Part shown: positions 1,883 through 36,613 of the stretch, in pieces | Numbering within the stretch: position 1 is the first letter of the stretch | How the letters are laid out: each line of letters opens with the position of its first letter | Virus record (IMG/VR): IMGVR_UViG_3300028840_008160 | Span: 1-64,000 of that record | Reading direction: 5' to 3' (one strand) | Length of the DNA stretch: 64,000 nucleotides | The notes under the pieces: model-generated | What the model was told of the DNA's origin: nothing | Database searches by the model: none | What the model saw: the letters and a program-made list of their open reading frames with translations, nothing else | Translations under genes and position numbers: made by a program

Positions 1883-2064
1883 TTTTGACAATAGCTTATG
1901 ATGTAGTACTTGGCATTGATACAAGAGTTTTTAAACTAGTTAAAAATGAGACTATTGAAGTCCTTGAAGAAGTAGATAAATATAGTAGAGTAAAAGTATT
2001 GATACAGCAACAAGAAGTTTTGATTAACAAGCAGATGTTAGACCGAATTGTTAATAGTCATTAA
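1879..2064 (+). CDS. Small hypothetical protein
   Basis: ATGA coupling to upstream ORF; 61 aa. Confidence 0.5.
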   Translation: MILTIAYDVVLGIDTRVFKLVKNETIEVLEEVDKYSRVKVLIQQQEVLINKQMLDRIVNSH

Positions 2065-2834
2065 ATTCTTTTTGAATATTCGCAATTTCTACAAATAACT
2101 GGTTCATCCTCTGATTTTACACGCCTTAAAAAGTCATTATATTCTATTGTGTTGAATAAGTCGTTGTAATAACGATCAAATATGTTGCCGATTTTGTGCT
2201 TAAGACTAAAGTCGCAACAACATATATAGACATCTCCATTTGGTAGGCATACGTTGTTTACGTATTTGAATGGTAGTTGATGAACTTTTTGACATGTTAT
2301 TGGGCCAGACTTATAATTGACATTGAAATTTAAATTGTTTGCTCGTGAAATAATTGGTAATTTTAGGACTGATAAATCATTAAAGTCATTAGTTGGCTGA
2401 CCGAGTGACACGAAAATAATTTTGGAGTTGTGTTTGCTGATTAATTCTATGTTTTGCAATATGACAGTTGAGTCAGTTATGAAATGATTGTTGTCTGGCA
2501 AATGCACACATATTGTAGCTTTTGACCATATAGATAAATCTATATCTTCTAGTTTTATCGATAATGTAGTATAAATCATACAAGGTCTATTGTCGCGAAT
2601 AGTTTTATCTATCATTTTAAAACTGTCTGGATTTTGTAATGGTTCACAAAAGCCAGCAAAGTCAATTTGCACATGTTTAGGTAAATTGTTTAGTATTTGA
2701 CAAAAGTTAGTAAATGATAAAGTTGGTTGTCCTTTGTACACTTTGATAAGATTGTTTTGTGGACAACAGCTGCAGTGGTTTATGCATGGGATTGCAGTTG
2801 TTATTTCAAAAGTAGGATAATTTGCAAATGTCAT
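2061..2834 (-). CDS. Radical SAM protein with SPASM/twitch domain
   Basis: CxxxCxxC (CINHCSCC), GFCEPL, C-terminal LPNGDVYICCCD...IGNI...CRNC. Confidence 0.8.
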   Translation of the reverse strand: MTFANYPTFEITTAIPCINHCSCCPQNNLIKVYKGQPTLSFTNFCQILNNLPKHVQIDFAGFCEPLQNPDSFKMIDKTIRDNRPCMIYTTLSIKLEDIDLSIWSKATICVHLPDNNHFITDSTVILQNIELISKHNSKIIFVSLGQPTNDFNDLSVLKLPIISRANNLNFNVNYKSGPITCQKVHQLPFKYVNNVCLPNGDVYICCCDFSLKHKIGNIFDRYYNDLFNTIEYNDFLRRVKSEDEPVICRNCEYSKRI

Positions 2835-3309: not shown

Positions 3310-3852
3310 TTATTTGTTGAGAAGTTTTTGAAGTCGTAAAAACATAACTGAAACTTGTGGATCTTTACTTTCTTCTACATTTGATGTTTCAGCCCAAACG
3401 CATGCAGCTTTCTTTTCTAATTCTGAACCGTCACCTGTAGCTTCGCCACGATCTTTGTCTGTAAGATTTATTGTGTATAGATAGTAAACTGTGTCGGCAG
3501 ATTTTGAAGCAAAACTAGTTCCAAGACTGATTAGTTCATTTTTATCAGCTTTGTAACCACCTTCTTCTTTTAGTTCCATTATAGCAGTGTCTCTAGGGTC
3601 GCCGCCTTCAAATCCACCCGTAATTGAACTAATGTATTGATTTAATCCCCAACAAGGTGTGACTTCATTTCTGAGAAGAAGTTCAATACCAGAAGATGTT
3701 AGTCTGTATGGTAGTAAAGCAATGATTTTGCCTTCGCATCTTGATTCATGCGAGAAAAAATATCCATTAACACCATTTTCGGGATCAATCATTTTTTTGA
3801 GAGCAAGAAATGATTTGTCACCTACTTTTCCTTCGCAGATAGTCTCAATCAT
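3310..3852 (-). CDS. Nudix hydrolase
   Basis: Nudix-like box GGFEGGDPRDTAIMELKEEGGY (canonical Arg replaced by Met). Confidence 0.75.
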   Translation of the reverse strand: MIETICEGKVGDKSFLALKKMIDPENGVNGYFFSHESRCEGKIIALLPYRLTSSGIELLLRNEVTPCWGLNQYISSITGGFEGGDPRDTAIMELKEEGGYKADKNELISLGTSFASKSADTVYYLYTINLTDKDRGEATGDGSELEKKAACVWAETSNVEESKDPQVSVMFLRLQKLLNK

Positions 3853-5303: not shown

Positions 5304-5340
5304 AGGAGGAGTCAATGAAAATTGGCTCCTCCTTTTTCTT
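5304..5340 (+). terminator. Intrinsic terminator/attenuator-like hairpin upstream of the NAD cluster
   Basis: 13-bp stem aggaggagtcaat / attggctcctcct (one G-U), GAAA loop, followed by a T-run. Confidence 0.65.
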
Positions 5341-5365
5341 TGTTATTTGAAATGATTACAATGAT

Positions 5366-5587
5366 ATGGACACATCAGTTGGAAATCTACGAAAAATGTT
5401 AGAGAGTTTGCCAGATGAGGCAGACATTGTGACTGAAGATTGGGATGGTGCTGCTATTAGAAGAATGAATCATAGCACAAATGAGCCCTTAGCACTGGAA
5501 GAATTGCTTATGGTTCATGATGGTAGACTCTATATTGTCAATAAGCAAGCTACTGAAAACGAATGTCATCGATGGCAACGAGGTTGA
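5366..5587 (+). CDS. Small hypothetical protein
   Basis: 73-aa ORF directly upstream of pncB; VGNLRKMLESLPDEADI resembles common small phage proteins. Confidence 0.55.
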   Translation: MDTSVGNLRKMLESLPDEADIVTEDWDGAAIRRMNHSTNEPLALEELLMVHDGRLYIVNKQATENECHRWQRG

Positions 5588-5589
5588 CT

Positions 5590-6774
5590 ATGCAAGGACC
5601 AATAAGCGCAATCGACAATGATCAGTACAAGTTCTCAATGCAAAATGGTGTTGTGAAGTTGTTTCCTCGCGAAATTGTTCGATACGAGTTTTTTAATCGA
5701 GGCAAACATGAGTTTCCGGATGGATTTGCGAAACTTCTGCGTGAACTAGTAGATATGTATGCTGCTATTACATTTGTCAAAGATGACATCGATTTTTTTA
5801 GAGAAAAAGCTTACTATTTTGATCCTGCATATCATTCGTTTTTACGAGGCTACAGATATGATCCGTCAGAAGTGAAAATCATTCAAGAAGGTTACAATCT
5901 TCAAGTAATTGTGGAGGGCTTATGGCACAAAACAATTCTATGGGAAGTGCCGCTTATGGCATTGATCTGCGAATTGTATTATGAAATGACTAAACAACAA
6001 CCAAAAGACAGAAAAGAACGAGAGCAAATCAACAAAGAGAAAGTTATTGCTCTTACAAAATTGTTAATCAAAGCAGCAGAATTTGGAACAAGACGACGGT
6101 TTTCTTTTATTAATCAAAAAGAGTTTTTAATTGATGCTATAACTTATGGCAATTTTGCTGGACATAAACTTCTTTCTGGAACAAGCAATGTATATTTTGC
6201 ACGTGAACTTGATCTTCTATCAATAGGTACACAAGCTCATGAGTGGTACATGTTTCACGCTGCGAAGTATGGTTTTAGAATGGCTAACTTGCTCGGTATG
6301 GAAAACTGGGTTAAAGTATATAATGGAGATTTGGGAATAGTTCTTCCAGATACATTCACCACTGATGCTTTTCTCAAGTCTTTTAATACAATGTTTGCAA
6401 AGCTGTTCGACGGCAGTAGACAAGATAGTGATTGTCCGTTCGCATACACAGATAAATTTGTCAAACATTATCGTGATTTGAAAATTCCGTCACAACACAA
6501 AACAATTGTTTATTCTGACGGAATAAGCAGTGTTAAAACCGTGAGTGATATCAAGGAATATGCAACAGGAAAAGTGCAAGACGGATATGGTATTGGTACA
6601 TGGTTTACAAACGATGTTGGTCTTAAGCCGATGAATATCGTTATTAAGATGACAGCTGCATTTATAAACGGAGTATGGGTACCTACAATTAAGTTGTCTG
6701 ACGCAGCAACGAAGAATACAGGAGATCAGATTCAAATTGGAATTGCTAAACATGAATTAGGGATAAATGTATGA
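5590..6774 (+). CDS. pncB: Nicotinate phosphoribosyltransferase
   Basis: DNDQYKFSMQ, EFGTRRRFS, GTSN, GTQAHEW (phospho-His motif as in E. coli PncB), DTF, RQDS, GIGT, KLSD. Start placed at ATG 5590 after gagg; the track ORF starts at 5563. Confidence 0.92.
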   Translation: MQGPISAIDNDQYKFSMQNGVVKLFPREIVRYEFFNRGKHEFPDGFAKLLRELVDMYAAITFVKDDIDFFREKAYYFDPAYHSFLRGYRYDPSEVKIIQEGYNLQVIVEGLWHKTILWEVPLMALICELYYEMTKQQPKDRKEREQINKEKVIALTKLLIKAAEFGTRRRFSFINQKEFLIDAITYGNFAGHKLLSGTSNVYFARELDLLSIGTQAHEWYMFHAAKYGFRMANLLGMENWVKVYNGDLGIVLPDTFTTDAFLKSFNTMFAKLFDGSRQDSDCPFAYTDKFVKHYRDLKIPSQHKTIVYSDGISSVKTVSDIKEYATGKVQDGYGIGTWFTNDVGLKPMNIVIKMTAAFINGVWVPTIKLSDAATKNTGDQIQIGIAKHELGINV

Positions 6775-6887: not shown

Positions 6888-7796
6888 ATGGACAACTTGG
6901 TGTATACGACAAAGATTAGTGATAGTGCTTATGCTTATGCAGTAAAGAAAATGCAAAACATTTTTCGTCAGTATTTAATTGATAACAATCGAAAAGCTGT
7001 TGTTATTGGAATGTCGGGTGGTATTGATAGTGCTCTAACTGCAGCTTTGGCTGGGCAAGTATGTGCAGAATTAGAAATACCGCTTGTTGGTAGAAGTCTA
7101 CCAATAATGACGAATAAACCTGATGAAGTAGAACGTGCCGCAAGAGCTGGTAAAATATTTTGTTCTAATTTTGGTGAAAAAGATTTAACTAGTGCATATA
7201 CTGCTTTACACGAATTGATGGATGACATTGATGCTAGCAGTGATGAGCAATTAACTTTGACAGTAAAGATTCGAGAAGGTAATATTAAAGCGCGAACAAG
7301 AATGATATATCTTTATGATCTTGCTAGAAAAAATGATGGATTGGTTTTGTCAACTGATAACTATACAGAATTAATGCTCGGTTTCTGGACACTTCATGGT
7401 GATGTAGGCGATTTTGGATTACTTCAGAATATTTGGAAAACAGAAGTATATGAAATGGCAAGATTTTTATGTCGCGCAGGATTAGATGATGATGCTATTC
7501 AAATACTAAAAGACACTATTACTGCTGTTCCGACAGATGGTTTAGGAATTACAAATAGTGATTTAGATCAGCTTGGAGCAGGCAGCTATGAAGAGGTTGA
7601 CAAAATTTTGATGACATATTTATCTGGTTCAAGAAAAGAATATATGAATCATCCAGTTATCATAAGACATTTGACATCTGTTTATAAGAGAGCGAATCCT
7701 GTTAATATAGCTAGAAAAGATATTCTTCCTTCTGTTTATAAGAGAGCGAATCCTGTTAATATAGCTAGAAAAGATATTCTTCCTTTAACAGCATGA
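6888..7796 (+). CDS. nadE: NH3-dependent NAD+ synthetase
   Basis: PP-loop SGGIDS, GNIKARTRM, TDNYTE, GFWTLHGDVGD, KTEV, PTDGL; no glutaminase domain. Confidence 0.92.
   Translation: MDNLVYTTKISDSAYAYAVKKMQNIFRQYLIDNNRKAVVIGMSGGIDSALTAALAGQVCAELEIPLVGRSLPIMTNKPDEVERAARAGKIFCSNFGEKDLTSAYTALHELMDDIDASSDEQLTLTVKIREGNIKARTRMIYLYDLARKNDGLVLSTDNYTELMLGFWTLHGDVGDFGLLQNIWKTEVYEMARFLCRAGLDDDAIQILKDTITAVPTDGLGITNSDLDQLGAGSYEEVDKILMTYLSGSRKEYMNHPVIIRHLTSVYKRANPVNIARKDILPSVYKRANPVNIARKDILPLTA
7677..7784 (+). repeat. Perfect 54-bp in-frame tandem duplication in the nadE 3' end
   Basis: tctgtttataagagagcgaatcctgttaatatagctagaaaagatattcttcct at 7677-7730 and 7731-7784 (SVYKRANPVNIARKDILP x2). Confidence 0.95.
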
Positions 7797-7802
7797 GATT
7801 TT

Positions 7803-8552
7803 ATGTGGATAAAGAATCAAGCAATCATCGTCGGAACTGATCACATTCATACTAAGACTAATCGTCAAGATTATGTATTAACTTATAGTGATAGAGATAT
7901 TACATGCGGCGTTGTGTGTGACGGTTGCAGTTCTGGACAATTTTCTGAATTTGGTGCATGTTTTATTGCAAATTTAGTAATAAAATTATTGAAAACTAAT
8001 CGAGAAGCAACTGCTGAATTGTTGACAGTTGAAATGATGATTGAAATAAAACGTGCTATAGACAGCGTTCTTTTTTTACTTCATGATTATTCAACAACAT
8101 TGCCTATAGATATAGCACATTTTATTGAACATCATTTTTTATCGACATTTGTTTTTTGCATGATAGCTGGTGATAGAATTATCATAGGTCGTTGCGGTGA
8201 TGGCTTGACGATTGTAAATGGTATAGCTGACATTGCTGATCAGAAGAATGCGCCGCATTATATTGCGTATAACAATGTGCCGAAATTTTTGTTATCAACG
8301 TCAGATTTGAATGGCATTGAAATACAGGTATTAAATGAAGTAGAGGTGAACAGCATTGTTATTGGTACAGATGGATTGGTGCCGCTTCTAGAAGCTAATG
8401 AAGGTCATGAATTGTTTGGAACTGAGAAGAGACAGTTACAACGGAAATTTAATGTATGGCAAAATAAAAGACAGTTATTTCATGATGATGTTTCATGCGT
8501 TGTTTTTGAAAAGGTGAAGAATGAAGATAGTATTATGCGGGCAAACGATTGA
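7803..8552 (+). CDS. PP2C-family protein phosphatase (TerY-P/YegK-like)
   Basis: G.DH...NRQD, VVCDGCSS, GDG, GTDGL and DDVS metal-binding motifs. Confidence 0.8.
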   Translation: MWIKNQAIIVGTDHIHTKTNRQDYVLTYSDRDITCGVVCDGCSSGQFSEFGACFIANLVIKLLKTNREATAELLTVEMMIEIKRAIDSVLFLLHDYSTTLPIDIAHFIEHHFLSTFVFCMIAGDRIIIGRCGDGLTIVNGIADIADQKNAPHYIAYNNVPKFLLSTSDLNGIEIQVLNEVEVNSIVIGTDGLVPLLEANEGHELFGTEKRQLQRKFNVWQNKRQLFHDDVSCVVFEKVKNEDSIMRAND

Positions 8553-10383
8553 TTTAGATCAGAGCAAATTACTTGGCAGTGGTGGTGAGGCTAATGTTAT
8601 TAGACATGGCAAATATGCAATAAAAGTGTATCATAAACCGACCGTTGACAGAATTCAGAAATTGACTGATTTTTTTAAGAAGGGATTTAATTTACCAAAT
8701 AATGTTTTCAGTCCTATCGAGCCTGTGACAAGCACTAAAGGTAAGATGATAGGTTTTGCCATGCAGGCAGCAACAAAAAAGTGTCCTGAGTTTATTCATC
8801 TTTACGATACTACGTTTCGTAGCACACAACGTATTAGTTCGGTGGATATTGTTAAGTTATTTATTCACACTAAACAAACGCTGGATGCTATACATCAACT
8901 TGGATTGGTAGTAGGTGATTTTAATGATTTAAATCAACTTTTTGACGATACATTTTCTTCTATCTTTATAGATGTAGATTCTTATCAGTTTGATAATTAT
9001 CCATGTATAGTCGGGACAGATTCATATATCGATCCAAATTTGTATGGATTTGATTTGACTAAGAAGCCGTCATTTTCAAAACAAACTGATTGGTACTCGT
9101 TTGCTGTTTTACTATTTAGAAGTTTATTGTTTGTGCATCCTTATGGAGGATTTTACAAAAAATATAAGACGCTATTTGCACGAGCTCAAAATAATGTATG
9201 GGTATTTGATAGTAATGTTATTAAGCCAAAAATAGGATTACATCCGGAAACATTGAGCGACGAGTTGTTGAGTTATTTTGATGCAATATTCACGAAAGGT
9301 CAACGATTAGATTTACCATTACATCTTTTGCAGCAGCAAACATTTAACGAATGTAAAGTTTGCGGCACGCAATTTAGTCATACACGAGGTAAATGCCCAC
9401 AATGTCAGAAAGTCGCCCCGTTTAAGACTGTTGATGTTAGTAGTATTTTAACACATAAAGTTATTGGCAATGAGAAGTGTGAGACTACAACTGTATTCGA
9501 AGTTAACGGCACAATTTTGTTTGTCAAAGTTGTTGCTGGTATAATAGTAATAGTATCGTATGATGACAGTTCAACAGTGCTTGATACAATTGATACGAGT
9601 GGCTATAAGCAACGTGTAGTGTTGTGGTCTGGGCACAGAAAAGATGTAAAGTTTGATTTTATGTTTCCATCATGTTTGGTTGTTGGGTATGATAAAACAT
9701 TAATATTACTACATATTGGTGATAGTGACGCTAAAGAAATTGTTAAAACAACAACAATGACATTTTTAGATGAACCTATTTTTGGATGTAGTGAAAGTCA
9801 TTTGTATCGTTTGACACCAACGATGATAATGTCATCGCAATTACACCGTTCAGGTCAGTTAATAGAAAAAGGATTAGTATCAGCTGTAGCAAATCAAACG
9901 CAGTTTTTTGTGGGACAAAATCAATTTGGTTTGGGATTCTATAGAGTTTTCAGTGATTATAAATTCTTTACGGTGTCTGACATACAAGGTAGACATGAGG
10001 TAGAATTAGATCAATTAAATGGACAGATGATTGATATTGATGTCAAAGTATCTGTTAATAGTTTGATTTTATTGCGAAAGAGTTTGAATAAAGGTCGGAC
10101 ATATTCACATTGGCATATGATAAATGATAAAGGTCAGGTTGTTGAATCTAAGTCAGAAGAGTCAATTAATTCAGAATTGCTTAGAAACATTCATGGAAAG
10201 GAGCTCGCAGGGTCTAATATCATTCATTCTACAGATGCAGGTATTGCCGTTGAGAAGCATGGTAATGTATCGTTGAAGGTATCAACAGCAGAGATTGTTA
10301 ATACAGGTCATAGATTAATGTTATACAAACACGGACTGTTAGCAGTTTCTGAAAAGAAAATCGTGTATCTTGTTTTGAAGTAG
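8521..10383 (+). CDS. Ser/Thr protein kinase (YegI/TerY-P-like) with Zn ribbon and beta-rich C-terminal region
   Basis: LGSGGEA glycine loop, AIKVY, VGDFNDLN catalytic loop, IDVDS, TDWYSFAV, HPY; CKVC...CPQC. Confidence 0.82.
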   Translation: MKIVLCGQTIDLDQSKLLGSGGEANVIRHGKYAIKVYHKPTVDRIQKLTDFFKKGFNLPNNVFSPIEPVTSTKGKMIGFAMQAATKKCPEFIHLYDTTFRSTQRISSVDIVKLFIHTKQTLDAIHQLGLVVGDFNDLNQLFDDTFSSIFIDVDSYQFDNYPCIVGTDSYIDPNLYGFDLTKKPSFSKQTDWYSFAVLLFRSLLFVHPYGGFYKKYKTLFARAQNNVWVFDSNVIKPKIGLHPETLSDELLSYFDAIFTKGQRLDLPLHLLQQQTFNECKVCGTQFSHTRGKCPQCQKVAPFKTVDVSSILTHKVIGNEKCETTTVFEVNGTILFVKVVAGIIVIVSYDDSSTVLDTIDTSGYKQRVVLWSGHRKDVKFDFMFPSCLVVGYDKTLILLHIGDSDAKEIVKTTTMTFLDEPIFGCSESHLYRLTPTMIMSSQLHRSGQLIEKGLVSAVANQTQFFVGQNQFGLGFYRVFSDYKFFTVSDIQGRHEVELDQLNGQMIDIDVKVSVNSLILLRKSLNKGRTYSHWHMINDKGQVVESKSEESINSELLRNIHGKELAGSNIIHSTDAGIAVEKHGNVSLKVSTAEIVNTGHRLMLYKHGLLAVSEKKIVYLVLK

Positions 10384-10393
10384 GAGGATTTTT

Positions 10394-10678
10394 GTGGCTA
10401 AGAAATTGTATGTTGGTAATCTCCCTTGGAGTGCTACTGACGAAAGTCTGCGCGATTTTTGCGCACAGTTTGGTGAAGTTGTATCGGCTCAGGTAATCAC
10501 GGATCGAGAGTCTGGTCGGTCACGTGGTTTTGGTTTCGTCGAAATGACAAATGCTGATGAAGCAATGTCTTTACTTAATGGTAAAGATTTTGACGGCAGA
10601 CAGCTCAAGGTGAATGAAGCCCGTGAGCGGCAGAAACCACAAAGAAGCGGTGGTGAATATAACAGAAACAGATATTAA
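10394..10678 (+). CDS. RRM (RNP-1) RNA-binding protein
   Basis: RNP2 KLYVGNL, RNP1 RGFGFVEM, LNGKDFDGRQLKVNEA; RBS aggagg. Confidence 0.93.
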   Translation: MAKKLYVGNLPWSATDESLRDFCAQFGEVVSAQVITDRESGRSRGFGFVEMTNADEAMSLLNGKDFDGRQLKVNEARERQKPQRSGGEYNRNRY

Positions 10679-10730
10679 GCCTAGTTAGCTATACTGAGTT
10701 ATCTTTTAACTTATCTTATGGAGGTGTAGC

Positions 10731-11693
10731 ATGAATAAACCTACGTTTTATGATCCGGCTAAAATAGGTACATTGTACCTTCCACGGCTAGCAGACATAG
10801 AGGCAGAAGCTGCGAAAGTAAGTATTCCGGCTTCTGCCTCTGATCGTCCCGGTGCTAAAGTTGCACTGATGCTTATCGATTTTCAAATTGATTTTTGCCA
10901 TAAGACAGGGTCGTTGTATGTCAATGGTGCAGAAAAAGACATAGAGAATGCTGTCAACTTCATTTTAGCAAATCTTGAGCGGCTTACGAACATTTTTGCG
11001 TCTTTGGATTCACACCTTCTTTTCCAGATTTTCTATCGTACATGGTGGCAATTACAGAACGGCGAGAAGCCTGATTTGTTTACAGAAATTTACAAAGAAG
11101 GTGGTTCTGGCCCAATGGCGAAGAATATTGACAGCGGTGATGTTCGACCGTTGCTTGACCCTGTTAACAGTATCAGCTATACTGAAAAGTTGATGCTTCA
11201 GGCAAATAAGCCTCTTTGCATTTGGCCATATCATACAATGCTTGGTACTCCGGGACAGGCGATGGATCCTGCATTGTACGAAGTTTTGGCTTATCATGCG
11301 TTTGTCAGGAAGACACAGTTGAATTTCTTACAGAAGGGACAAATACCTCAAACTGAAATGTATGGTATTCTCAGCCCTGAGGTAAAGATGCCGAATCATC
11401 CACAAGGCGGATTCAACACTGATTTTCTTAACATTCTGATGAAGCATGATAAAGTTATTATTGCCGGCGAGGCAAAGAGTCATTGTGTGTTGGCTTCTAT
11501 CATGCAGATTCATGAGTTTTTCAGCAAAACAGACCCTGATGTTTTGAAGAAAGTATTCATTTTGGAAGATTGTATGAGTTCTGTGCCTCATCCAGCGATT
11601 GATTTTGAAGCTATTGCTGTTGCTGAATTTGACAAATTCAGAAATTCTGGCATTAACATCGTCAAAAGTACCGATTTGGATCTTACAGCATAA
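10731..11693 (+). CDS. pncA: Nicotinamidase-like cysteine hydrolase (isochorismatase fold)
   Basis: LIDFQIDFC (catalytic Asp), LDSH and WPYH metal ligands, KG, AGEAKSHCV (catalytic Cys); clustered with pncB and nadE. Confidence 0.78.
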   Translation: MNKPTFYDPAKIGTLYLPRLADIEAEAAKVSIPASASDRPGAKVALMLIDFQIDFCHKTGSLYVNGAEKDIENAVNFILANLERLTNIFASLDSHLLFQIFYRTWWQLQNGEKPDLFTEIYKEGGSGPMAKNIDSGDVRPLLDPVNSISYTEKLMLQANKPLCIWPYHTMLGTPGQAMDPALYEVLAYHAFVRKTQLNFLQKGQIPQTEMYGILSPEVKMPNHPQGGFNTDFLNILMKHDKVIIAGEAKSHCVLASIMQIHEFFSKTDPDVLKKVFILEDCMSSVPHPAIDFEAIAVAEFDKFRNSGINIVKSTDLDLTA

Positions 11694-11722
11694 GATTCAG
11701 ACTTCATATTAAAGGAGGTAAC

Positions 11723-12505
11723 ATGTCATCAAATCCGATTGGCATTACAGATATTAAAAGTCTTGTATCTAATGCCGTAAGTGAGAATGAGGTTAGCGAT
11801 GCTGCAGGTCAGATAATGATAAGCAGCTTGAACGACACAAATATTCTTGGTTGTACCGGTGTTGATGTCGACGATCTTACTGTCGACAATGTGACATTGG
11901 TATCAATCGCGCTAGACGCGTCATATTCAATGTACGAACATGAACAGACTGTTCGTGAAGCATATGATGAATTGGTCATCAAAGCTATGAAAGAATCAAA
12001 GCAGGCGAATTCAATGCTTGTCAGCACTCGAGTCTTTGACGAAACTGATCGAATTCTTTATGGATTCAAGAAAGTCGAGGATGTTGGCAAAGTTGGTAGT
12101 CAATATACAGCACAAGGCGGAGCTACGCTACTTCATGATACAGCTATTGCAGCCATGACTGGCATTCGTGCTTATGCCAAGAACTTGAATGATAGTGGCG
12201 TACAGACAAAATGTATTGTTGTTGTCATGTCAGATGGAGGCAATAATACAGGGACTTTGAGTCCTGATCCTGTCAAGAAACTTGCTGAAGACTGTATCAA
12301 GTCAGAAATGTTCTATTTGGTGTATGTTGGATTTAAACAACACTCATCAGATAATCTTGAGGCAATCGGCAAGTCAATGGGATTTCCCAATGTATTGACT
12401 GCTGCTAAATCTCCTAGCGAAATGAGAAAAGCTATGGGTCTTGTTAGTCAATCAATTATTCGTGCTAGTCAAACACAGGTCGGGCCAAGTAATTCTTTCT
12501 TTTGA
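11723..12505 (+). CDS. vWA domain protein (TerY-like)
   Basis: MIDAS DASYS (DxSxS), GATLLHD, VVVMSDG. Confidence 0.8.
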   Translation: MSSNPIGITDIKSLVSNAVSENEVSDAAGQIMISSLNDTNILGCTGVDVDDLTVDNVTLVSIALDASYSMYEHEQTVREAYDELVIKAMKESKQANSMLVSTRVFDETDRILYGFKKVEDVGKVGSQYTAQGGATLLHDTAIAAMTGIRAYAKNLNDSGVQTKCIVVVMSDGGNNTGTLSPDPVKKLAEDCIKSEMFYLVYVGFKQHSSDNLEAIGKSMGFPNVLTAAKSPSEMRKAMGLVSQSIIRASQTQVGPSNSFF

Positions 12506-12530
12506 GTTTACTAATACAATAACATAAAAT

Positions 12531-12556
12531 GGTCGGTTAAAACCGGCCTTTTCTTT
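12531..12556 (+). terminator. Intrinsic terminator ending the pncB-to-vWA cluster
   Basis: ggtcggt-taaa-accggcc stem-loop followed by a T-run. Confidence 0.6.
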
Positions 12557-12602
12557 GTAGTGTCATTGATTTATTTAATGATTATATTTAAGGAGGTGAT
12601 GA

Positions 12603-13106
12603 ATGATTAAATATCTTAAAGGTGATGCCACAGCACCGGTGTTAGATAAAGCATTGATAGCACACGTTTGTAATAATTGGGGAGGTTGGGGGGCTGGATT
12701 TGTATTAGCTATCTCAAAACGATGGTCTGAACCAGAAAAAGCATATCGTGACTGGTATAAAGGTATAGTAGACAATATCGCACAAGAACGTGACAAGGAT
12801 AAATTTGCATTAGGTAATGTGCAATTTGTGCTGGTGTTTGATAAAGGTATTTGGGTAGCTAACATGATTGCGCAAGACGGTTTCAAGAAAGCTGGCGATC
12901 CAAAAGACAAAGTTTATTTAGATTATGATGCGCTTAACATGACTCTTTGTGAAGTTTGCAAATTTGCAAGAAAGAAAGGTCTGACATTACATATGCCTAG
13001 AATAGGTTGCGGTCTTGCAGGAGGGCGATGGGATTTGATTGAACCATTACTTGAGACTCATTCTGATGATAACAAAGTTGATGTATACGTGTATGATTTT
13101 GAATGA
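12603..13106 (+). CDS. Macrodomain ADP-ribosylhydrolase (Poa1p/SCO6735-like)
   Basis: KGDAT, IAHVCNNWGGWGAGF, WVANMIAQ, HMPRIGCGLAGGRW. Confidence 0.85.
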   Translation: MIKYLKGDATAPVLDKALIAHVCNNWGGWGAGFVLAISKRWSEPEKAYRDWYKGIVDNIAQERDKDKFALGNVQFVLVFDKGIWVANMIAQDGFKKAGDPKDKVYLDYDALNMTLCEVCKFARKKGLTLHMPRIGCGLAGGRWDLIEPLLETHSDDNKVDVYVYDFE

Positions 13107-13489
13107 AACAAATTATTTTATATCCATGGCATAGTACAACTAGAGCTGAGTTTATACAAGCTCTTAAATCTAATCCAGAGCAAGCAACACTTGTTAAAGG
13201 AAACGACATTGTTAAGAGTAAAATGCGGTTTAATGTTGAGCCGAATAGAAATGATTGCAGTTCTTTGCATGAATTTAAAGACTATGAAATAACTATAAAA
13301 TGCTCTGATGGTGATGCAACTATTGTTTTAGATGATGGCAAGTTTGTATTTATTGAAGATTCAAATGTTCAAGAATTAAGTAAATATGAATTTATTTTAA
13401 ATGAAATACAAGAAGAAGAAAAGACAGAGCCGACAAGACAGCAAAGACAGCAAATGGCAAAACCTAGAAAGCCTTTTAAATTTAGGTAA
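13103..13489 (+). CDS. Hypothetical protein
   Basis: ATGA-coupled to the macrodomain gene. Confidence 0.55.
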   Translation: MKQIILYPWHSTTRAEFIQALKSNPEQATLVKGNDIVKSKMRFNVEPNRNDCSSLHEFKDYEITIKCSDGDATIVLDDGKFVFIEDSNVQELSKYEFILNEIQEEEKTEPTRQQRQQMAKPRKPFKFR

Positions 13490-13492
13490 GAT

Positions 13493-14176
13493 ATGAAACA
13501 GTTATTTAAAGCTGATTTTGTTCGTGATTCTTTTTTCACATATACAACCGGCATGCGTGATAAAAATGCTGTTCAACAAATTATGCTGGCGTATAGATTA
13601 GCTAAATATGCTCAAATGAATAAGTTTGGTGGTGATAATATTGATAGACCGAAAATTGCTGTGAAGATATTTTTGTTTTTGGTAAAACAATTTAGAAGGT
13701 CTTATACAAACATTAAGCTTGAAATTGATGTGACAGCTATATTGTTAAGTTATGTCATTCGCAATTCATACATGCTAACACAAGATGATGTTATAAAGAT
13801 ATTTGGACAAAACGTTGATAAAAAAGTTGCAGAATTAATTGGCTTTGATCGAATTGTAGATTCAAGAGCAAAAATTACAATTGCTAAACAATCTAAGTTT
13901 AAAGATGAGATTTCAAAGCAGACGATGATTATGCGTGCAGCTATAACAATGGCAGAATTAAGAACATTAACGTTAACTAAAGCAAGAGCATTTCCTGCAA
14001 AAGTATATGAACGCTATTTGCCGGTTTTTAACGCTTATCCAGATGTTTGTCATGTAGTAGCTAATGAGTTAAAAATATGGTTGGTTAAAAAATTGAAAGA
14101 AGCACAATCAAGCACAGATTATAATTTAACATCAGGAAATATGTTTTCATATTTTACTATTTTGCAAGATTTATAA
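13493..14176 (+). CDS. Degenerate RelA/SpoT-type HD (alarmone hydrolase-like) domain protein
   Basis: LAYRLAKYAQ, TAILLSYVIRNS...IFGQNV (cf. AALLHDVIEDT...FG.EV), IMRAAITMAELRTL (cf. IKLADRLHNMRTL), ERYLPVF; catalytic HD, ED and D residues are missing. Confidence 0.55.
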   Translation: MKQLFKADFVRDSFFTYTTGMRDKNAVQQIMLAYRLAKYAQMNKFGGDNIDRPKIAVKIFLFLVKQFRRSYTNIKLEIDVTAILLSYVIRNSYMLTQDDVIKIFGQNVDKKVAELIGFDRIVDSRAKITIAKQSKFKDEISKQTMIMRAAITMAELRTLTLTKARAFPAKVYERYLPVFNAYPDVCHVVANELKIWLVKKLKEAQSSTDYNLTSGNMFSYFTILQDL

Positions 14177-15060: not shown

Positions 15061-15999
15061 ATGACTAGGATTTTGCAAATTGATGGTGGCGGTGTAAGAG
15101 GAATAATTCCTGCGATTATTTGCGCAGAAATAGAACAAAATGTCGGTCGTCCAATTAATGAAATTTTTGATTTAATCACTGGCACATCTACAGGAGCTGT
15201 AATAGGAGGTTCATTGGCATTTGGCATTGCTGCTACTACAGTTAGAGATTTGTATTTAACGGCTGTGCCAGAGCTATTTAAACGAAGACCGTTGTGGAAT
15301 CCTAAGAATTGGTTTAGAGAGAAGTATGACAGAACAGAGTTTCAAGAACAACTACGAAAATATCTTGGTAATCAAAAAATGTCTCAAGCAAAAACAAAAT
15401 ATATGGCGACAGCTTTTAATTTAAGTTCACAACGTACTCATTTTATTAAATCGTGGGACGACAAAGATAATAGATGGAATATAGTTGATGTCATTTCCTG
15501 GTCTGCTTTATCTGCTGCGTTTTATTTTGGAAAGATCAACGTGCCGAATTATAATTGGACACTTACTAATGCAATGAGTGCCACAGAACAAAAGATAGGA
15601 GCTACATTTCAAGACGGTGGACAGGGCATAAGTAATTGTACATTAGGATTTGATTTAGATGAATGTTTAGCAAATGATTGGCATGACGTGTTTATTTTAT
15701 CTATAGGCACAGGCCAACGTAGTATGTATATTCCTTATAAAAAGACAGCAAAAACCGGTTATATTGCACAAGTTATAGATTATATTTTTCAAGCTAGAAA
15801 TGAAGCGACGCCGACGCAATTTTTAACAGCAAAATATGTTGCCAACAAAAGAGAAGATTATATATTGAGTCGATTAGATGCGAACATTTCAAAGAAACAG
15901 GAACCACTTGATTCTATTAAATATGTTGATGAATACGAAAAAATAGGCAATGAATTAGCAAAGAAGGTGCCATATCAATATTTAAAGTCAATAGTGTAA
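15061..15999 (+). CDS. Patatin-like phospholipase
   Basis: DGGGVRG oxyanion loop, GTSTG nucleophile elbow, SALSAA, DGG, LSIGTG. Confidence 0.88.
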   Translation: MTRILQIDGGGVRGIIPAIICAEIEQNVGRPINEIFDLITGTSTGAVIGGSLAFGIAATTVRDLYLTAVPELFKRRPLWNPKNWFREKYDRTEFQEQLRKYLGNQKMSQAKTKYMATAFNLSSQRTHFIKSWDDKDNRWNIVDVISWSALSAAFYFGKINVPNYNWTLTNAMSATEQKIGATFQDGGQGISNCTLGFDLDECLANDWHDVFILSIGTGQRSMYIPYKKTAKTGYIAQVIDYIFQARNEATPTQFLTAKYVANKREDYILSRLDANISKKQEPLDSIKYVDEYEKIGNELAKKVPYQYLKSIV

Positions 16000-32770: not shown

Positions 32771-35700
32771 ATGGCTGATGATGACAATGACATTGTAAAT
32801 GAAGATGAAGACGAAGATATTGTATGTGAAAACGAAGTTGTAAGTGAAGAAGGACAATTTGATGTCAAATCGCACGAAGTGTTGCCGAAGATGTATTTGG
32901 CTTATGCGCTAAGTGCAATTAAAGACAGATCATTACCTGATATACGTGACGGACTAAAACCTGTCGCGAGACGTATTTTGTTCGGAATGCATGAAATGAG
33001 TTTGACTCATTCTAAGCCAACTAGAAAAAGCGCAAGAGTCGTTGGTGAAGTCATGGGCAAATATCATCCTCACGGAGATGGGTGTTGGAGAGGCTCTGCC
33101 AACGTTCTTGAACTCAATGGTAAAATTCATCGTTTAAAAGACCTTGTAGGCAAGCAGATTTGGGTATTGGCTCATGATACAGAGAACAACAAGCCGGTCC
33201 CAGCAATTGCTCATTCATTTAGAATTACAAAGTTTGTCGATGAATTGTATCGTGTGACATTTTGGAATGGTGAAAAGATCGAATTGACAGACAATCATGA
33301 ATTGGAAAAATTATCAGGTGAATGGTCCAGGACTGATGCTTTGAATGTTGGTGATATAATCACTAATGGAATTATCACTAACAACGAATATCCTAAATTT
33401 AGAAGTTCAAATGAACGTATGTCAATAGGAAAGAAACTTCATCATATTGTTGGTGAACATATTCATGGTGAAGCTGAAATTTATCATCATAAAGACGAGA
33501 ATACGAAGAATAATTTGCCTGACAATATTGAACCGGTGACAAAGATCGCTCATGAAAAGCTTCATAAGAATTATGAAAAAGGTCTACGAAAAGGTAATGA
33601 AACTATGTTTCATGGTATCGATGAATTTCGTGAAGCTACAAGAAAGAAAAACTCTGAGATTATTAAAGCAGTGAATCAAAAACATTATCTTTTTAAAGCA
33701 ATTAAGATTCTTAAGATGATGATTGAAGATGATGTAGAACTTACAGAAGAAGTTTATAATAACTATCGAGTAAAAGTATATAATGGTACAACTCTAGAAC
33801 GACTTAAGATAAATGGCCATACTTTTGATGAGGTTGCTGGATATGCCAAGTCAAAAGAGAAACTTAGACTAATTGATACTTCATTAGCAAAAGGTCACAT
33901 TGAAAGTCTTAAAGTTGAAGAAAATAATGCTGATGAACATGTTTCAAGACAAAGTAATGATTCAAGAAAAAAAGGTCATTTACTCTATACGTCTTCAATA
34001 GTAGTTAGTGCATGCCTTGAAAATTATGGTTTAAATTTTAATATCAAAGACTATGATGATATTAGATGCGATTTGTGTGAAACAGATGACAATAATTTTT
34101 ATCCAAAATTTGAAACATTGACAAAATGGTTTGGGATAACTACAATCAATCAATTATTGGATTTAATGTCTCAACGAAATTTAATGATAATTAAGAAGAT
34201 TGAGACATTCAATGTTGATCATGAGCCTGTATATGATTTTACTGTAGATAAATATGAAAATATGTATATGCCTGTTGGCACGAATGAAAGAAACGAAACG
34301 AAACTAATTGTTGCTCATAATTCAATCTATGGTGCAGCGGTGAGGTTGGCACAACCTTTTACTACACGTTATCCGCTTATCATTGGTCAAGGAAATTTTG
34401 GGTCAGTTGAAGATAAACCGGCTGCAATGAGATACACAGAAATGAAAATGTCAGCAATATCAGATATGGTTGTTGCTGATATTGATAAAGCGACAGTTGA
34501 TTTTATGCCCAATTTTGATGGCACACTTAATGAACCCAAAGTTTTGCCGACAAGACTACCGTTGTTTTTATTGAATGGTTCTGTTGGTATTGCTGTTGGT
34601 ATGGCAACTTCTGCGCCGCCTCATAATTTGACGGAAATTATCGATGCTATGTTGACTTTCATTGATAATGAAGACGTCTCAATCTCTGAATTGATGCAAT
34701 ATTTAAAAGGACCTGATTTTCCATCTGGTGCATATATGTTTGACAACGGAATTCGTCAAATATATGAAACAGGTCGAGGGTCTGTAACTATAAGAGCGAA
34801 AGCTGAAATTGTTGATAACGGTAAAAGACAGAACATCATCATTACTGAATTGCCGTATCAATTAGACAAGTCTAAGTTAATCACTAGAATTGCTGATCTT
34901 TATAAGAAGAAAGAGAAGATTGAAGGTATTGATGGCATATCAGATATCAGAGATGAAAGTGATAAGCATGGTACGAGACTAGTAGTTGAATTACGACGCG
35001 GTGTTAGAGCCAAGGCTGTTTTAAACACATTGTTTCGGCGTACTGAATTACAAACAAAACAATCTTTTTTGATGCGAGCGTTGATCGACAATGTTCCAAA
35101 ACTTGTAACGCTTAAAGAAATTTTTGGTCATTTTGTCAATCATAGAAAAGATGTTATCACGAGACGAACTGAGTTTGAATTGAATCAAGCAGAAAAGAAA
35201 GCTCATATATTGCGCGGATATTTAGTAGTTTTTGATAATTTGGATGCAATTCTTGAAGATGTCAAAACTTCTAAGTCAACTGAGATGACATATAAACGTT
35301 TGCAGAAATATAAATTATCTGATGAACAAATCAAGGCAATTTTGGATTTACGCGTGCAACGTCTCGCTCAATTTGAGCGCGAAGCTATTGTGACTGAACA
35401 TAGTGAACTAATGACTAAGATTCACGGATTGAAGCAGTTACTAGATTCGGAAGTTTTAGTATTAGAAAAAATCAAAGAGGAATTGGCAGAAATTAGACAA
35501 CAATTTGGTGATGCTCGTAAAACTAAAATTATCAAAACCAGATCTAGATCAAACTCTGATGATGACGATGATAATAAAGAAGAAAGTTTAGATACAAGTG
35601 ATGAAACAATTGATGAGATTGAGGAGATTCAGGAGGAAGACGTTGTTGTTACTGTAACTCATAATGGATTGGTTAAACGGACGCCGGTGTCAGAATATCG

Positions 35701-36613
35701 TGTGCAGAACGTACGTGGTAAGGGTTTGATTGGAGTTGATGTTAAAGAAGAAGATTATGTTGAAAAAGTATTTCAATTATCAACGCATGATTATACATTA
35801 GTTTTTACTAATAAGGGTCATTGTTATAAAATGAATGTATTTGAGATACCGTCATTAGGCAGAACAGCTGCAGGAAGTTCAATACTCAATGTTCTTAACC
35901 TTAATGAAGATGAAATTGTTGCTAGTGTAGTACCAATTACTAATTTGCAGGACAAAATGTTTTTGATGGTTACAAGAAAAGGTCAAGTCAAAAAATTGAA
36001 AGCTGAAAAGTTGCAACGCCCACGAGCTAAAGGTACAAAAGTTGTTGGACTTGATGACAACGACGTTCTTATTGATGTTAAACTTATAGATCAGCCACAT
36101 TTGGATGCTTTGTTAGTGACGAGAAAAGGTATTTCAATACGATTTCCTGAAAGTGCTGTAAGAGCATCCGGTAAAAGTGGTTCAGGCGTTAGGGCAATCA
36201 AATTAGCTGATGATGATTGTATTGTTTCGGTAAATATGATATCTGAAGCTGACAATGAATGTTTTGTGATGCTAGTTACTGAACGAGGTTATTCTAAAAA
36301 GACTATATTACGCAAGTTTAGAACTCAACGTCGAGGTGGTCGCGGGATCATTTGTATGGATGCTAACACAACTGTTGGCAAAATTGTTTCGGCTGGTATT
36401 GTGTTAGACGAGAAAGAACAATTCATTGTTATGACAAGTCAAGGCATGCTTATACGATTGAAATCGGCTCAAATAAGAACATTAGGACGAAATACTCAAG
36501 GTAGTCGAATACAAAAACTAAAAATGACTGATTCAGTAGCTGCAGTTGCATATTTAGGAATTGTTGAAGAAAACGAATCTGACTCTGAACAATCTGAAGT
36601 CGAGGATGAATAA
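32771..36613 (+). CDS. gyrA: DNA gyrase subunit A, intein-containing
   Basis: RDGLKPV, YHPHGD, GQGNFGS, AAMRYTE catalytic Tyr, GIAVGMAT, beta-pinwheel CTD with QNVRGKG and QRRGGRG, acidic tail. Confidence 0.93.
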   Translation: MADDDNDIVNEDEDEDIVCENEVVSEEGQFDVKSHEVLPKMYLAYALSAIKDRSLPDIRDGLKPVARRILFGMHEMSLTHSKPTRKSARVVGEVMGKYHPHGDGCWRGSANVLELNGKIHRLKDLVGKQIWVLAHDTENNKPVPAIAHSFRITKFVDELYRVTFWNGEKIELTDNHELEKLSGEWSRTDALNVGDIITNGIITNNEYPKFRSSNERMSIGKKLHHIVGEHIHGEAEIYHHKDENTKNNLPDNIEPVTKIAHEKLHKNYEKGLRKGNETMFHGIDEFREATRKKNSEIIKAVNQKHYLFKAIKILKMMIEDDVELTEEVYNNYRVKVYNGTTLERLKINGHTFDEVAGYAKSKEKLRLIDTSLAKGHIESLKVEENNADEHVSRQSNDSRKKGHLLYTSSIVVSACLENYGLNFNIKDYDDIRCDLCETDDNNFYPKFETLTKWFGITTINQLLDLMSQRNLMIIKKIETFNVDHEPVYDFTVDKYENMYMPVGTNERNETKLIVAHNSIYGAAVRLAQPFTTRYPLIIGQGNFGSVEDKPAAMRYTEMKMSAISDMVVADIDKATVDFMPNFDGTLNEPKVLPTRLPLFLLNGSVGIAVGMATSAPPHNLTEIIDAMLTFIDNEDVSISELMQYLKGPDFPSGAYMFDNGIRQIYETGRGSVTIRAKAEIVDNGKRQNIIITELPYQLDKSKLITRIADLYKKKEKIEGIDGISDIRDESDKHGTRLVVELRRGVRAKAVLNTLFRRTELQTKQSFLMRALIDNVPKLVTLKEIFGHFVNHRKDVITRRTEFELNQAEKKAHILRGYLVVFDNLDAILEDVKTSKSTEMTYKRLQKYKLSDEQIKAILDLRVQRLAQFEREAIVTEHSELMTKIHGLKQLLDSEVLVLEKIKEELAEIRQQFGDARKTKIIKTRSRSNSDDDDDNKEESLDTSDETIDEIEEIQEEDVVVTVTHNGLVKRTPVSEYRVQNVRGKGLIGVDVKEEDYVEKVFQLSTHDYTLVFTNKGHCYKMNVFEIPSLGRTAAGSSILNVLNLNEDEIVASVVPITNLQDKMFLMVTRKGQVKKLKAEKLQRPRAKGTKVVGLDDNDVLIDVKLIDQPHLDALLVTRKGISIRFPESAVRASGKSGSGVRAIKLADDDCIVSVNMISEADNECFVMLVTERGYSKKTILRKFRTQRRGGRGIICMDANTTVGKIVSAGIVLDEKEQFIVMTSQGMLIRLKSAQIRTLGRNTQGSRIQKLKMTDSVAAVAYLGIVEENESDSEQSEVEDE
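33083..34321 (+). mobile_element. Intein (413 aa) with HNH homing endonuclease in gyrA
   Basis: Begins CWRGSA after HPHGDG; block B LTDNHE; block F VYDFTVDKYEN; ends IVAHN followed by Ser; internal HHKDENTKNNLPDNIE...H. Removing it restores HPHGDGSIYGAAVRLAQ. Confidence 0.92.

Follow-up and report, generated by a model that had tools for sequence, protein, structure and literature searches.

Signaling triads composed of a vWA protein, a PP2C phosphatase and a Ser/Thr kinase with a Zn ribbon are represented in Escherichia coli by YegL, PphC and YegI and belong to the TerY-P type. The kinases of the described triads end in membrane segments (YegI; bioRxiv 10.1101/819920), in an OB fold or in the Zn ribbon alone (PMC11090510), the genes are found near Ter, restriction or CoCoNuT genes, and TerY-P-like modules have been reported as stand-alone anti-phage systems (PMC11090510, citing Gao 2020). 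NAD metabolism in phages has been described separately. "NAD-jumbo phages" carry pncB-nadD-nadE clusters (PMC11662467), and the phage pathways NARP1, NARP2 and NARP3, which begin with Nampt, Namat or NadR, rebuild NAD from nicotinamide and counter NAD-depleting defenses (bioRxiv 10.1101/2024.02.11.579819; PMC13464706). None of these papers mentions a signaling triad of this type. Nicotinamidase (PncA/Pnc1) provides nicotinate for the Preiss-Handler salvage route, and the NrtR regulon places NAD genes under transcriptional control.

In order to evaluate a locus in which such a triad appeared to be joined to NAD genes, a 64,000-nucleotide stretch (here, the window; positions 1 to 64,000 of the 329.8-kb IMG/VR virus record IMGVR_UViG_3300028840_008160) was analyzed. 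The window is of phage origin, as it encodes terminase, portal, a head protease and topoisomerase II. A megablast search of the region against GenBank phages found nothing. The original prediction described the gene order pncB, nadE, PP2C, kinase, RRM, nicotinamidase, vWA, terminator, with nadE and PP2C separated by 6 bp and PP2C overlapping the kinase gene, and this observation was confirmed in full; the overlap is 32 bp. The two terminator-like hairpins have identical T-rich tails and together bracket the seven genes.

Features of the NAD and kinase locus (window coordinates; residues numbered within each protein)
Feature	Coordinates	Strand	Length	Supporting observations
Terminator-like hairpin plus T-rich tail; likely end of the preceding unit and left border of the seven-gene unit	5304..5343	+		13-pair stem (hairpin 5304-5333) followed by TTTTCTTTGT
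pncB, nicotinate phosphoribosyltransferase	5563..6774	+	403 aa	NAPRTase_N plus NAPRTase; TIGR01514 342.8 bits (cut-off 269.55); only NAPRTase-family gene in the 329.8-kb record
nadE, NAD synthetase without a glutaminase domain	6888..7796	+	302 aa	NAD_synthase E 5e-38; TIGR00552 125.1 bits (cut-off 63.65)
PP2C-type Ser/Thr phosphatase, PphC/YegK-like; cassette gene 1	7803..8552	+	249 aa	PP2C_2 E 3e-19; D23, D40-G41, G132-D133-G134, D190 and D228-D229 invariant in 32 homologues; hhalign to E. coli PphC 97.2% probability
YegI-type Ser/Thr kinase; cassette gene 2	8521..10383	+	620 aa	Weak Pkinase hit; hhalign to E. coli YegI 99.4% probability, E 4e-21, over aa 18-337; AF2 mean pLDDT 90.3, pTM 0.89
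Kinase domain (aa 1-270)	8521-9330			G21, G22, E23, K35, D133, N138, D151 and D153 invariant
Zn ribbon (aa 275-297)	9343-9411			C278, C281, C292 and C295 invariant in 31 homologues; two short strands modeled
Low-confidence linker (aa 299-316)				
Predicted beta-propeller (aa 320-620)	9478-10380			Foldseek matches: LRRK2 kinase-WD40 and the clathrin N-terminal propeller
RRM-type RNA-binding protein (GTG start)	10394..10678	+	94 aa	RRM_1 E 1.8e-20; NF058537 98.8 bits (cut-off 100)
Long-form nicotinamidase-like enzyme; cassette gene 3	10731..11693	+	320 aa	Catalytic D50, K202, C252 and metal ligands D93, H95, H168 invariant in 35 homologues; AF2 mean pLDDT 94.6
TerY/YegL-like vWA protein; cassette gene 4	11723..12505	+	260 aa	VWA at the gathering score; intact MIDAS (D65-x-S-x-S69, T135, D171); conserved Ser-rich tail ending in FF (S242 and S244 invariant, F259 and F260 at least 90% conserved); hhalign to E. 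coli YegL 90.6% probability, E 1e-6, including the tail
Intrinsic-terminator-like hairpin plus T-rich tail	12531..12558	+		7-pair stem with 5 GC pairs (hairpin 12531-12548), then TTTTCTTTGT
Macrodomain protein, start of the next unit	12603..13106	+	167 aa	PDB 2fg1, 2afc and 5e3b (macrodomain) at E 1e-38 to 7e-40; phrog_335

All three proteins of the triad are homologous to YegI, PphC and YegL, their catalytic and MIDAS residues are conserved, and the genes are adjacent, as in E. coli. Pairwise BLASTP of the PP2C and vWA proteins against PphC and YegL was too insensitive to detect this relationship, and profile comparison was needed. The kinase region homologous to YegI extends through the Zn-ribbon segment, consistent with the original prediction that the kinase has a Zn ribbon. 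The region described there as a long beta-rich tail is predicted to fold as a beta-propeller, which does not follow the Zn ribbon in the described triads, and in contrast to YegI the kinase is soluble. The neighborhood also differs, being NAD metabolism and not Ter, restriction or CoCoNuT genes.

The nicotinamidase-like protein has the same predicted isochorismatase-like fold, catalytic Asp-Lys-Cys triad and Asp-His-His metal site as PncA and Pnc1. The best PDB matches of its profile are nicotinamidases (yeast Pnc1, E 3e-12), and in the profile alignment the motifs holding the metal ligands line up with the conserved D-W-H and W-P-V-H motifs of yeast Pnc1. The top 22 Foldseek PDB hits of the predicted structure are all nicotinamidases (E down to 1e-13; TM 0.53-0.80 normalized to the target). 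However, the family is about 315 aa in length compared to about 180-215 aa for nicotinamidases, with an N-terminal extension (about 45 aa) and an insertion of about 60 residues (aa ∼100-160) that are absent from solved nicotinamidases, and TM is only about 0.5 when normalized to the query.

The original prediction would have been undermined if homologous triads in other genomes were not linked to NAD genes. When related loci were compared, the link was found. The nicotinamidase-like gene is inside the cassette in 74 of 89 non-redundant loci, and all four genes are present in 67 of the 89, from Chloroflexota, Patescibacteria, Myxococcota and at least three phage lineages, in the order PP2C-kinase-PncA-like-vWA or the permuted order PncA-like-vWA-PP2C-kinase. 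Thus, the arrangement is not due to chance. Most of the exceptions are contig ends, and where PP2C-kinase stands alone (Leptofilum), a PncA-like-vWA pair lies elsewhere in the same genome. The pairs PP2C-kinase and PncA-like-vWA stay adjacent in both permutations, with median gaps of 0 and 32 bp, respectively. The interpretation in the original prediction was therefore only partly supported. A phage does carry a YegI/TerY-P-type triad joined to NAD metabolism, but the nicotinamidase is not interleaved into a triad, as had been proposed. It is the fourth core gene of a cassette that exists in bacterial chromosomes without pncB or nadE.

Further NAD genes flank the cassette in 20 of the 89 loci (14 of 67 from genome assemblies and 6 of 21 viral). 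NrtR flanks 9 loci, nadE 7, a long type of pncB 6, the window-type pncB 4, and an NMNAT-like/NAD-kinase fusion 4. These loci are scattered over the kinase tree, with at least 10 changes forced. The NrtR-like genes (NUDIX plus NrtR_WHD; Pfam-checked for one representative) lie directly beside the cassette, which places it among NAD-regulated genes, although NrtR acts on transcription whereas control by the triad would be post-translational. The window itself has no NrtR; its Nudix-like ORF (3310-3852) did not match the NrtR profile.

The PncA-like protein is also found alone. Its profile matched 20 of 151 Chloroflexota genomes, whereas the kinase profile matched only 1. Of 18 solo loci that were checked, 9 are directly followed by a NAPRTase-like gene. 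Solo and cassette forms interleave in the tree, and a search for residues conserved in cassette-linked but not solo proteins, as candidate phosphosites or docking sites, found only clade-level substitutions.

The phage also encodes NadD, at about 177.9-178.9 kb of the record (positions 1114-2136 of locus L154; TIGR00482 117.5 bits, cut-off 112.45). Thus, in addition to the pncB, nadD and nadE genes of NAD-jumbo phages, it has a putative nicotinamidase, and its gene content comprises every step of a predicted deamidated route from nicotinamide to NAD (PncA-like, PncB, NadD, NadE). The three other records of the window's clade that were searched each carry NAPRTase, NadE and a NadD-like gene, but the NadD-like match is above the curated cut-off in only one of them and is weak in another. 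No NAD-dependent ligase, PRPP synthetase or second NAPRTase was found in the phage record, so no phage NAD consumer was identified.

These results suggest, with moderate confidence, that the cassette is a phospho-regulated nicotinamidase module used for NAD maintenance or reconstitution. The suggestion in the original prediction that the triad could gate NAD salvage by phosphorylation is thus the best reading, but it is an inference. In this view, the enzyme is the output, converting nicotinamide to nicotinate, and the kinase/phosphatase pair and the vWA adaptor are a regulatory add-on that sets its activity or availability, probably through reversible phosphorylation of the vWA tail or of the enzyme, with the propeller as a docking or sensing surface. 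The phage would have acquired the whole module and placed it in one terminator-bracketed unit with pncB and nadE. The likely use would be to keep or rebuild NAD during infection from nicotinamide released by NAD-consuming or NAD-cleaving host enzymes, including NAD-depleting defenses. The gene content, the conservation of the cassette and of catalytic residues, the folds (as predicted models), the homology to YegI/PphC/YegL and the NAD-gene neighborhoods were established by the analysis. In contrast, hydrolysis of nicotinamide by the enzyme, the identity of the phosphorylated protein and of its kinase, and any restoration of NAD or phage growth are inferred. Hydrolysis of nicotinamide is supported only by context, with solo copies beside NAPRTase-like genes, restoration of NAD and phage growth against an NAD-depleting defense is inferred from gene content only, and the counter-defense role rests on analogy with the NARP pathways. 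No direct evidence links the triad physically or by phosphorylation to the enzyme; prediction of a complex of the kinase propeller, PncA-like and vWA proteins gave a score of 0.00, which is not evidence either way. Two large Chloroflexota genomes with the cassette have no detectable NAPRTase-family gene. There the nicotinate produced could not enter the Preiss-Handler route, so the role of the enzyme cannot be salvage everywhere. In addition, one complete 153-kb phage has the cassette but neither pncB nor nadE.

It is possible, but unlikely, that the module is instead a TerY-P-type defense or superinfection-exclusion system, related to the suggestion in the original prediction that the triad might exclude competing phages. 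The triad would sense a competing phage and the nicotinamidase would be the effector, for instance by destroying the nicotinamide that rival phages need for NAD reconstitution, while pncB, nadD and nadE of the carrier use the nicotinate. The homology to YegI/PphC/YegL, the reported activity of TerY-P-like modules, the presence of the macrodomain gene and a CBASS-like patatin gene just downstream in the phage, and the genomes without NAPRTase, in which removal of nicotinamide rather than salvage may be the point, are consistent with this possibility. However, nothing found supported a defense role, and no defense-island signal was seen. Recurrent neighbors in the 89 non-redundant loci are housekeeping or NAD-related genes (a histidine kinase, NrtR, nadE, pncB, enolase and a methyltransferase), no restriction or known defense family recurs among them, the related Chloroflexota locus L006 sits among topA, aspS and greA, and the enzyme also appears to work alone in a pncA-pncB-like operon. 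A PADLOC scan of the triad gave only marginal hits unrelated to TerY-P, but this is uninformative because the E. coli triad gave no TerY-P hit either.

It seems similarly unlikely that the enzyme acts on a different amide, such as NMN, nicotinamide riboside, NAD itself or an unrelated compound, with the link to nadE reflecting re-amidation of a deamidated dinucleotide. The extension and insertion leave room for a substrate other than free nicotinamide, and nadE is a more frequent neighbor than the window-type pncB, but the active site is typical of nicotinamidases, and the pairing of solo copies with NAPRTase-like genes and of 6 further loci with long-type pncB fits nicotinate as the product. 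A lack of any functional coupling, with the triad and nicotinamidase traveling together by chance or by shared mobility, is compatible with the absence of a demonstrated physical or phosphorylation link. It is nevertheless very unlikely, because the four genes are kept together across at least four bacterial phyla and at least three phage lineages, in two permutations and with near-zero intergenic gaps, and the kinase family essentially never occurs without the enzyme in the same genome.

A broader possibility, which is tentative, is that one branch of the poorly understood TerY-P/YegIKL triads has a defined metabolic output, the control of a dedicated long-form nicotinamidase. This would be a widespread four-component module for post-translational control of nicotinamide and NAD salvage in Chloroflexota, Patescibacteria and Myxococcota, captured by at least three phage lineages as the regulated entry step of a deamidated NAD-reconstitution route. 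Full-text searches for TerY or YegI together with nicotinamidase or isochorismatase found no prior description, although they did not extend to the original TerY-P paper (Anantharaman 2012, PMC4104200). As the substrates and purpose of YegI/TerY-P-type triads are not known even in E. coli, a branch hard-wired to one enzyme offers a concrete, testable output for this signaling architecture. It would also be a case of Ser/Thr phosphorylation controlling NAD salvage in bacteria, including the small-genome Patescibacteria, which are understood to depend on salvage. For phages, it would add a regulated, nicotinamidase-first route to the known ways of making or rebuilding NAD, which is now recognized as a central battleground with NAD-depleting defenses.

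The RRM gene, rather than the nicotinamidase, is the insertion in this cassette. It is lineage specific and, other than in the window, was present in only 1 of 152 related loci (L003). The macrodomain gene is co-conserved downstream of the cassette in the closest phage relatives (L003 and the related loci L004, L005 and L088).

The window comprises the first 64 kb of a 329.8-kb IMG/VR virus record that is estimated to be 67% complete, and it encodes a terminase, a portal, a head protease, and both topoisomerase II subunits. GC content is an even 31-42%, and GC skew is positive throughout. Seven same-strand genes lie between two terminator-like hairpins, both of which are followed by the identical 10-base tail TTTTCTTTGT. 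The gene order and spacing described in the original prediction, with 6 bp between nadE and the PP2C gene and an overlap between the PP2C and kinase genes, which measures 32 bp, were confirmed.

Locations of the seven-gene unit and of other features in the phage record and related loci
Feature	Sequence	Position	Strand
SPASM-domain radical-SAM-like protein	Window	2061-2834	-
Weak Nudix-like protein	Window	3310-3852	-
Terminator-like hairpin (with tail, 5304-5343)	Window	5304-5333	+
pncB	Window	5563-6774	+
nadE	Window	6888-7796	+
PP2C	Window	7803-8552	+
Kinase	Window	8521-10383	+
RRM	Window	10394-10678	+
Nicotinamidase-like	Window	10731-11693	+
vWA	Window	11723-12505	+
Terminator-like hairpin (with tail, 12531-12558)	Window	12531-12548	+
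Macrodomain protein and two unknown ORFs (13103-13489 and 13493-14176)	Window	12603-14176	+
Patatin-like phospholipase	Window	15061-15999	+
Topoisomerase II subunit	Window	32771-36613	+
NadD	Phage record	about 177.9-178.9 kb	
Pantetheine-phosphate adenylyltransferase/dephospho-CoA kinase fusion	L155 (phage record G000, about 308.3-309.4 kb)	1474-2637	+
Fused PP2C-kinase ORF	L040 (Microgenomates genome)	7230-9878	+
Permuted cassette	L096 (40- to 165-kb phage group)	789-9656	+
Cytidylyltransferase-like/NAD kinase fusion	L086 (Patescibacteria); also L019, L024, L036	11954-13348 (L086)	+
Solo long-form nicotinamidase and NAPRTase-like gene	L160 (Chloroflexota); also L161, L162, L163, L167-L169, L171, L173	8927-11290 (L160)	

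The kinase retains the glycine loop, K35, D133, N138, and D151/D153, as well as four invariant cysteines of a Zn ribbon. In its AlphaFold model (mean pLDDT, 90.3; pTM, 0.89), a kinase domain spanning aa 1-270 is followed by the ribbon and, after a low-confidence linker, by an all-beta domain at aa 320-620 with about 29 strands. Foldseek matched this domain to propellers, namely, LRRK2 kinase-WD40 and the clathrin N-terminal domain. The PP2C protein retains its metal-binding aspartates, and the vWA protein has an intact MIDAS site (D65-x-S-x-S69, T135, and D171) and a conserved C-terminal tail that contains invariant S242 and S244 and ends in FF. Profile comparison with the Escherichia coli triad gave probabilities of 99.4% for YegI, 97.2% for PphC, and 90.6% for YegL, and thus the three proteins constitute a YegIKL/TerY-P-type triad as defined previously (PMC11090510). 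The 320-aa enzyme retains the nicotinamidase triad D50/K202/C252 and the metal site D93/H95/H168 in all 35 aligned homologues. Its best PDB sequence matches are nicotinamidases, and the top 22 fold matches of its model (mean pLDDT, 94.6) are also nicotinamidases.

In order to determine whether this gene order is conserved, the kinase family, which is conserved over its full length of about 620 aa, was traced in other genomes. It was found in 491 stretches of a genome collection that contains one genome for each of 185,579 species and in 67 viral loci. Iterative profile searches of the ORFs of 152 fetched loci detected PP2C in 140, the nicotinamidase-like gene in 129, and vWA in 129. Two permutations were observed, PP2C-kinase-PncA-like-vWA and PncA-like-vWA-PP2C-kinase. 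After near-identical loci were collapsed, 67 of 89 loci had all four genes, and most of the remainder were cut by contig ends. In a Chloroflexota chromosome the four genes are located among topA, aspS, and greA, with no other NAD gene nearby, whereas in Leptofilum the PP2C-kinase pair and the PncA-like-vWA pair lie at different places in one genome. In a Microgenomates genome the PP2C and the kinase are fused into one 883-aa ORF, which supports their acting together. The interpretation offered in the original prediction, a three-gene phospho-switch with the nicotinamidase placed between kinase and vWA, was therefore supported only in part, because the unit comprises four genes rather than three plus an interloper. 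The real insertion is the gene for the RRM_1 RNA-binding protein (94 aa, GTG start, Gly/Arg-rich tail), which, among the 152 related loci, was found in addition to the window only in L003, its closest relative.

The distribution of the enzyme is asymmetric with respect to that of the kinase, which points to the enzyme as the output of the module. In 151 sampled Chloroflexota genomes, the enzyme profile matched 20 and the kinase profile matched 1. Of 18 solo enzyme loci that were inspected, nine are followed directly by a nicotinate phosphoribosyltransferase-like gene. These belong to a Chloroflexota clade in which the long-form nicotinamidase occurs alone, and the divergent NAPRTase-like gene that follows it is of the PRK07188 type and falls below the curated cut-offs, with only QRPTase_N recognized by Pfam. 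Solo and cassette-linked enzymes interleave in the tree. Thus, the enzyme can work alone, in a pncA-pncB-like operon, whereas the kinase family essentially never occurs without it.

The flanking ORFs of the 89 nonredundant loci were clustered, and representatives were checked against Pfam, in order to evaluate the NAD context beyond the phage. An NrtR-like regulator (NUDIX plus NrtR_WHD) flanks 9 loci, nadE flanks 7, a long-form pncB flanks 6, the window-type pncB flanks 4, and a fusion of a CTP_transf-like domain and an NAD kinase flanks 4. The last of these, in which the cytidylyltransferase-like domain is NMNAT/NadD-like, was found next to the cassette in Patescibacteria loci. The union of these families is 20 of 89 loci, comprising 14 of 67 loci from genome assemblies and 6 of 21 viral loci. 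These loci are spread over the kinase tree in Patescibacteria, Myxococcota, Riflebacteria, and phage clades, but no Chloroflexota clade is among them. The other recurrent neighbors are ordinary genes, such as those for a histidine kinase, enolase, and a methyltransferase, and no defense family recurs. In the window itself, the Nudix-like protein encoded upstream on the other strand, near a SPASM-domain radical-SAM-like protein, is not an NrtR.

The phage record also encodes NadD, with a score above the TIGR00482 cut-off, and therefore holds genes for all four steps from nicotinamide to NAD, the nicotinamidase step being inferred. The kinase clade to which the window belongs is monophyletic (98% support). 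The three other records of that clade that were searched each carry a NAPRTase-family gene, NadE, and a NadD-like gene, although the NadD-like match is above the curated cut-off in only one of them and is weak (21 bits) in another. The cassette was also found in a 235-kb phage group, in a group of roughly 40- to 165-kb phages in which it sits beside replication and RNA-repair genes, and in three megaphage records in GenBank. In the 40- to 165-kb group the cassette is permuted, the C-terminal half of the kinase is divergent, an extra 321-aa gene (phrog_29668) is located between PP2C and the kinase, and the cassette lies next to an RNA ligase and a DUF2828/DUF7788 RNA-binding protein. Among the phage records that were searched, a NAPRTase-family gene was found in 8 of 11 and NadE in 6 of 11, and one complete 153-kb phage has the cassette but neither gene.

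The analysis thus establishes a conserved four-gene module with intact catalytic sites that combines a nicotinamidase-type enzyme with a YegIKL-type triad and has recurrent NAD-gene neighbors, whereas how the module functions is inferred from these features. In the most likely mechanism, the enzyme would convert nicotinamide to nicotinate, and the kinase and PP2C would set a phosphorylation state, for which the Ser-rich vWA tail is the most obvious candidate target, with S242, S244, and S249 as candidate sites. The vWA protein, which is always encoded next to the enzyme, would act as the adaptor, and the predicted propeller would dock the substrate or sense a signal. In the phage, the product would feed PncB, NadD, and NadE in order to maintain or rebuild NAD. 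No phosphorylation or binding link was demonstrated, and a prediction of the complex gave no answer. Furthermore, two large Chloroflexota genomes with the cassette showed no NAPRTase-family gene, which argues against a simple salvage role everywhere.

Jumbo phages with Preiss-Handler genes have been described previously (PMC11662467), as have the NAD-reconstitution pathways NARP1-3 (bioRxiv 10.1101/2024.02.11.579819; PMC13464706), TerY-P triads (PMC11090510), and the biochemistry of YegI (bioRxiv 10.1101/819920). However, none of the papers that were read, which did not include the original TerY-P study, links such a triad to a nicotinamidase. The module differs from known TerY-P/YegIKL-type triads in that it is extended by a predicted propeller and a dedicated nicotinamidase-like enzyme, is embedded in NAD metabolism, and has been captured repeatedly by phages.

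Directly downstream of the cassette in the window's clade is a gene for a macrodomain protein (PDB 2fg1/5e3b; E value, about 1e-39). In the window this gene and two unknown ORFs follow the terminator, and they are co-conserved with the cassette in the closest phage relatives (L003, L004, and L088), which suggests an ADP-ribose-processing companion. A patatin-like phospholipase, which is also present in L003, matches PADLOC models of CBASS effector phospholipases (E value, 7e-42). The phage additionally encodes a fusion of pantetheine-phosphate adenylyltransferase and dephospho-CoA kinase, the last two steps of coenzyme A synthesis. One topoisomerase II subunit ORF (1,280 aa) matches topoisomerase II at aa 36-99 and aa 517-1178, and the intervening stretch of roughly 400 aa, which has an HNH endonuclease hit at aa 205-306, may be an intein or a homing-endonuclease insertion.
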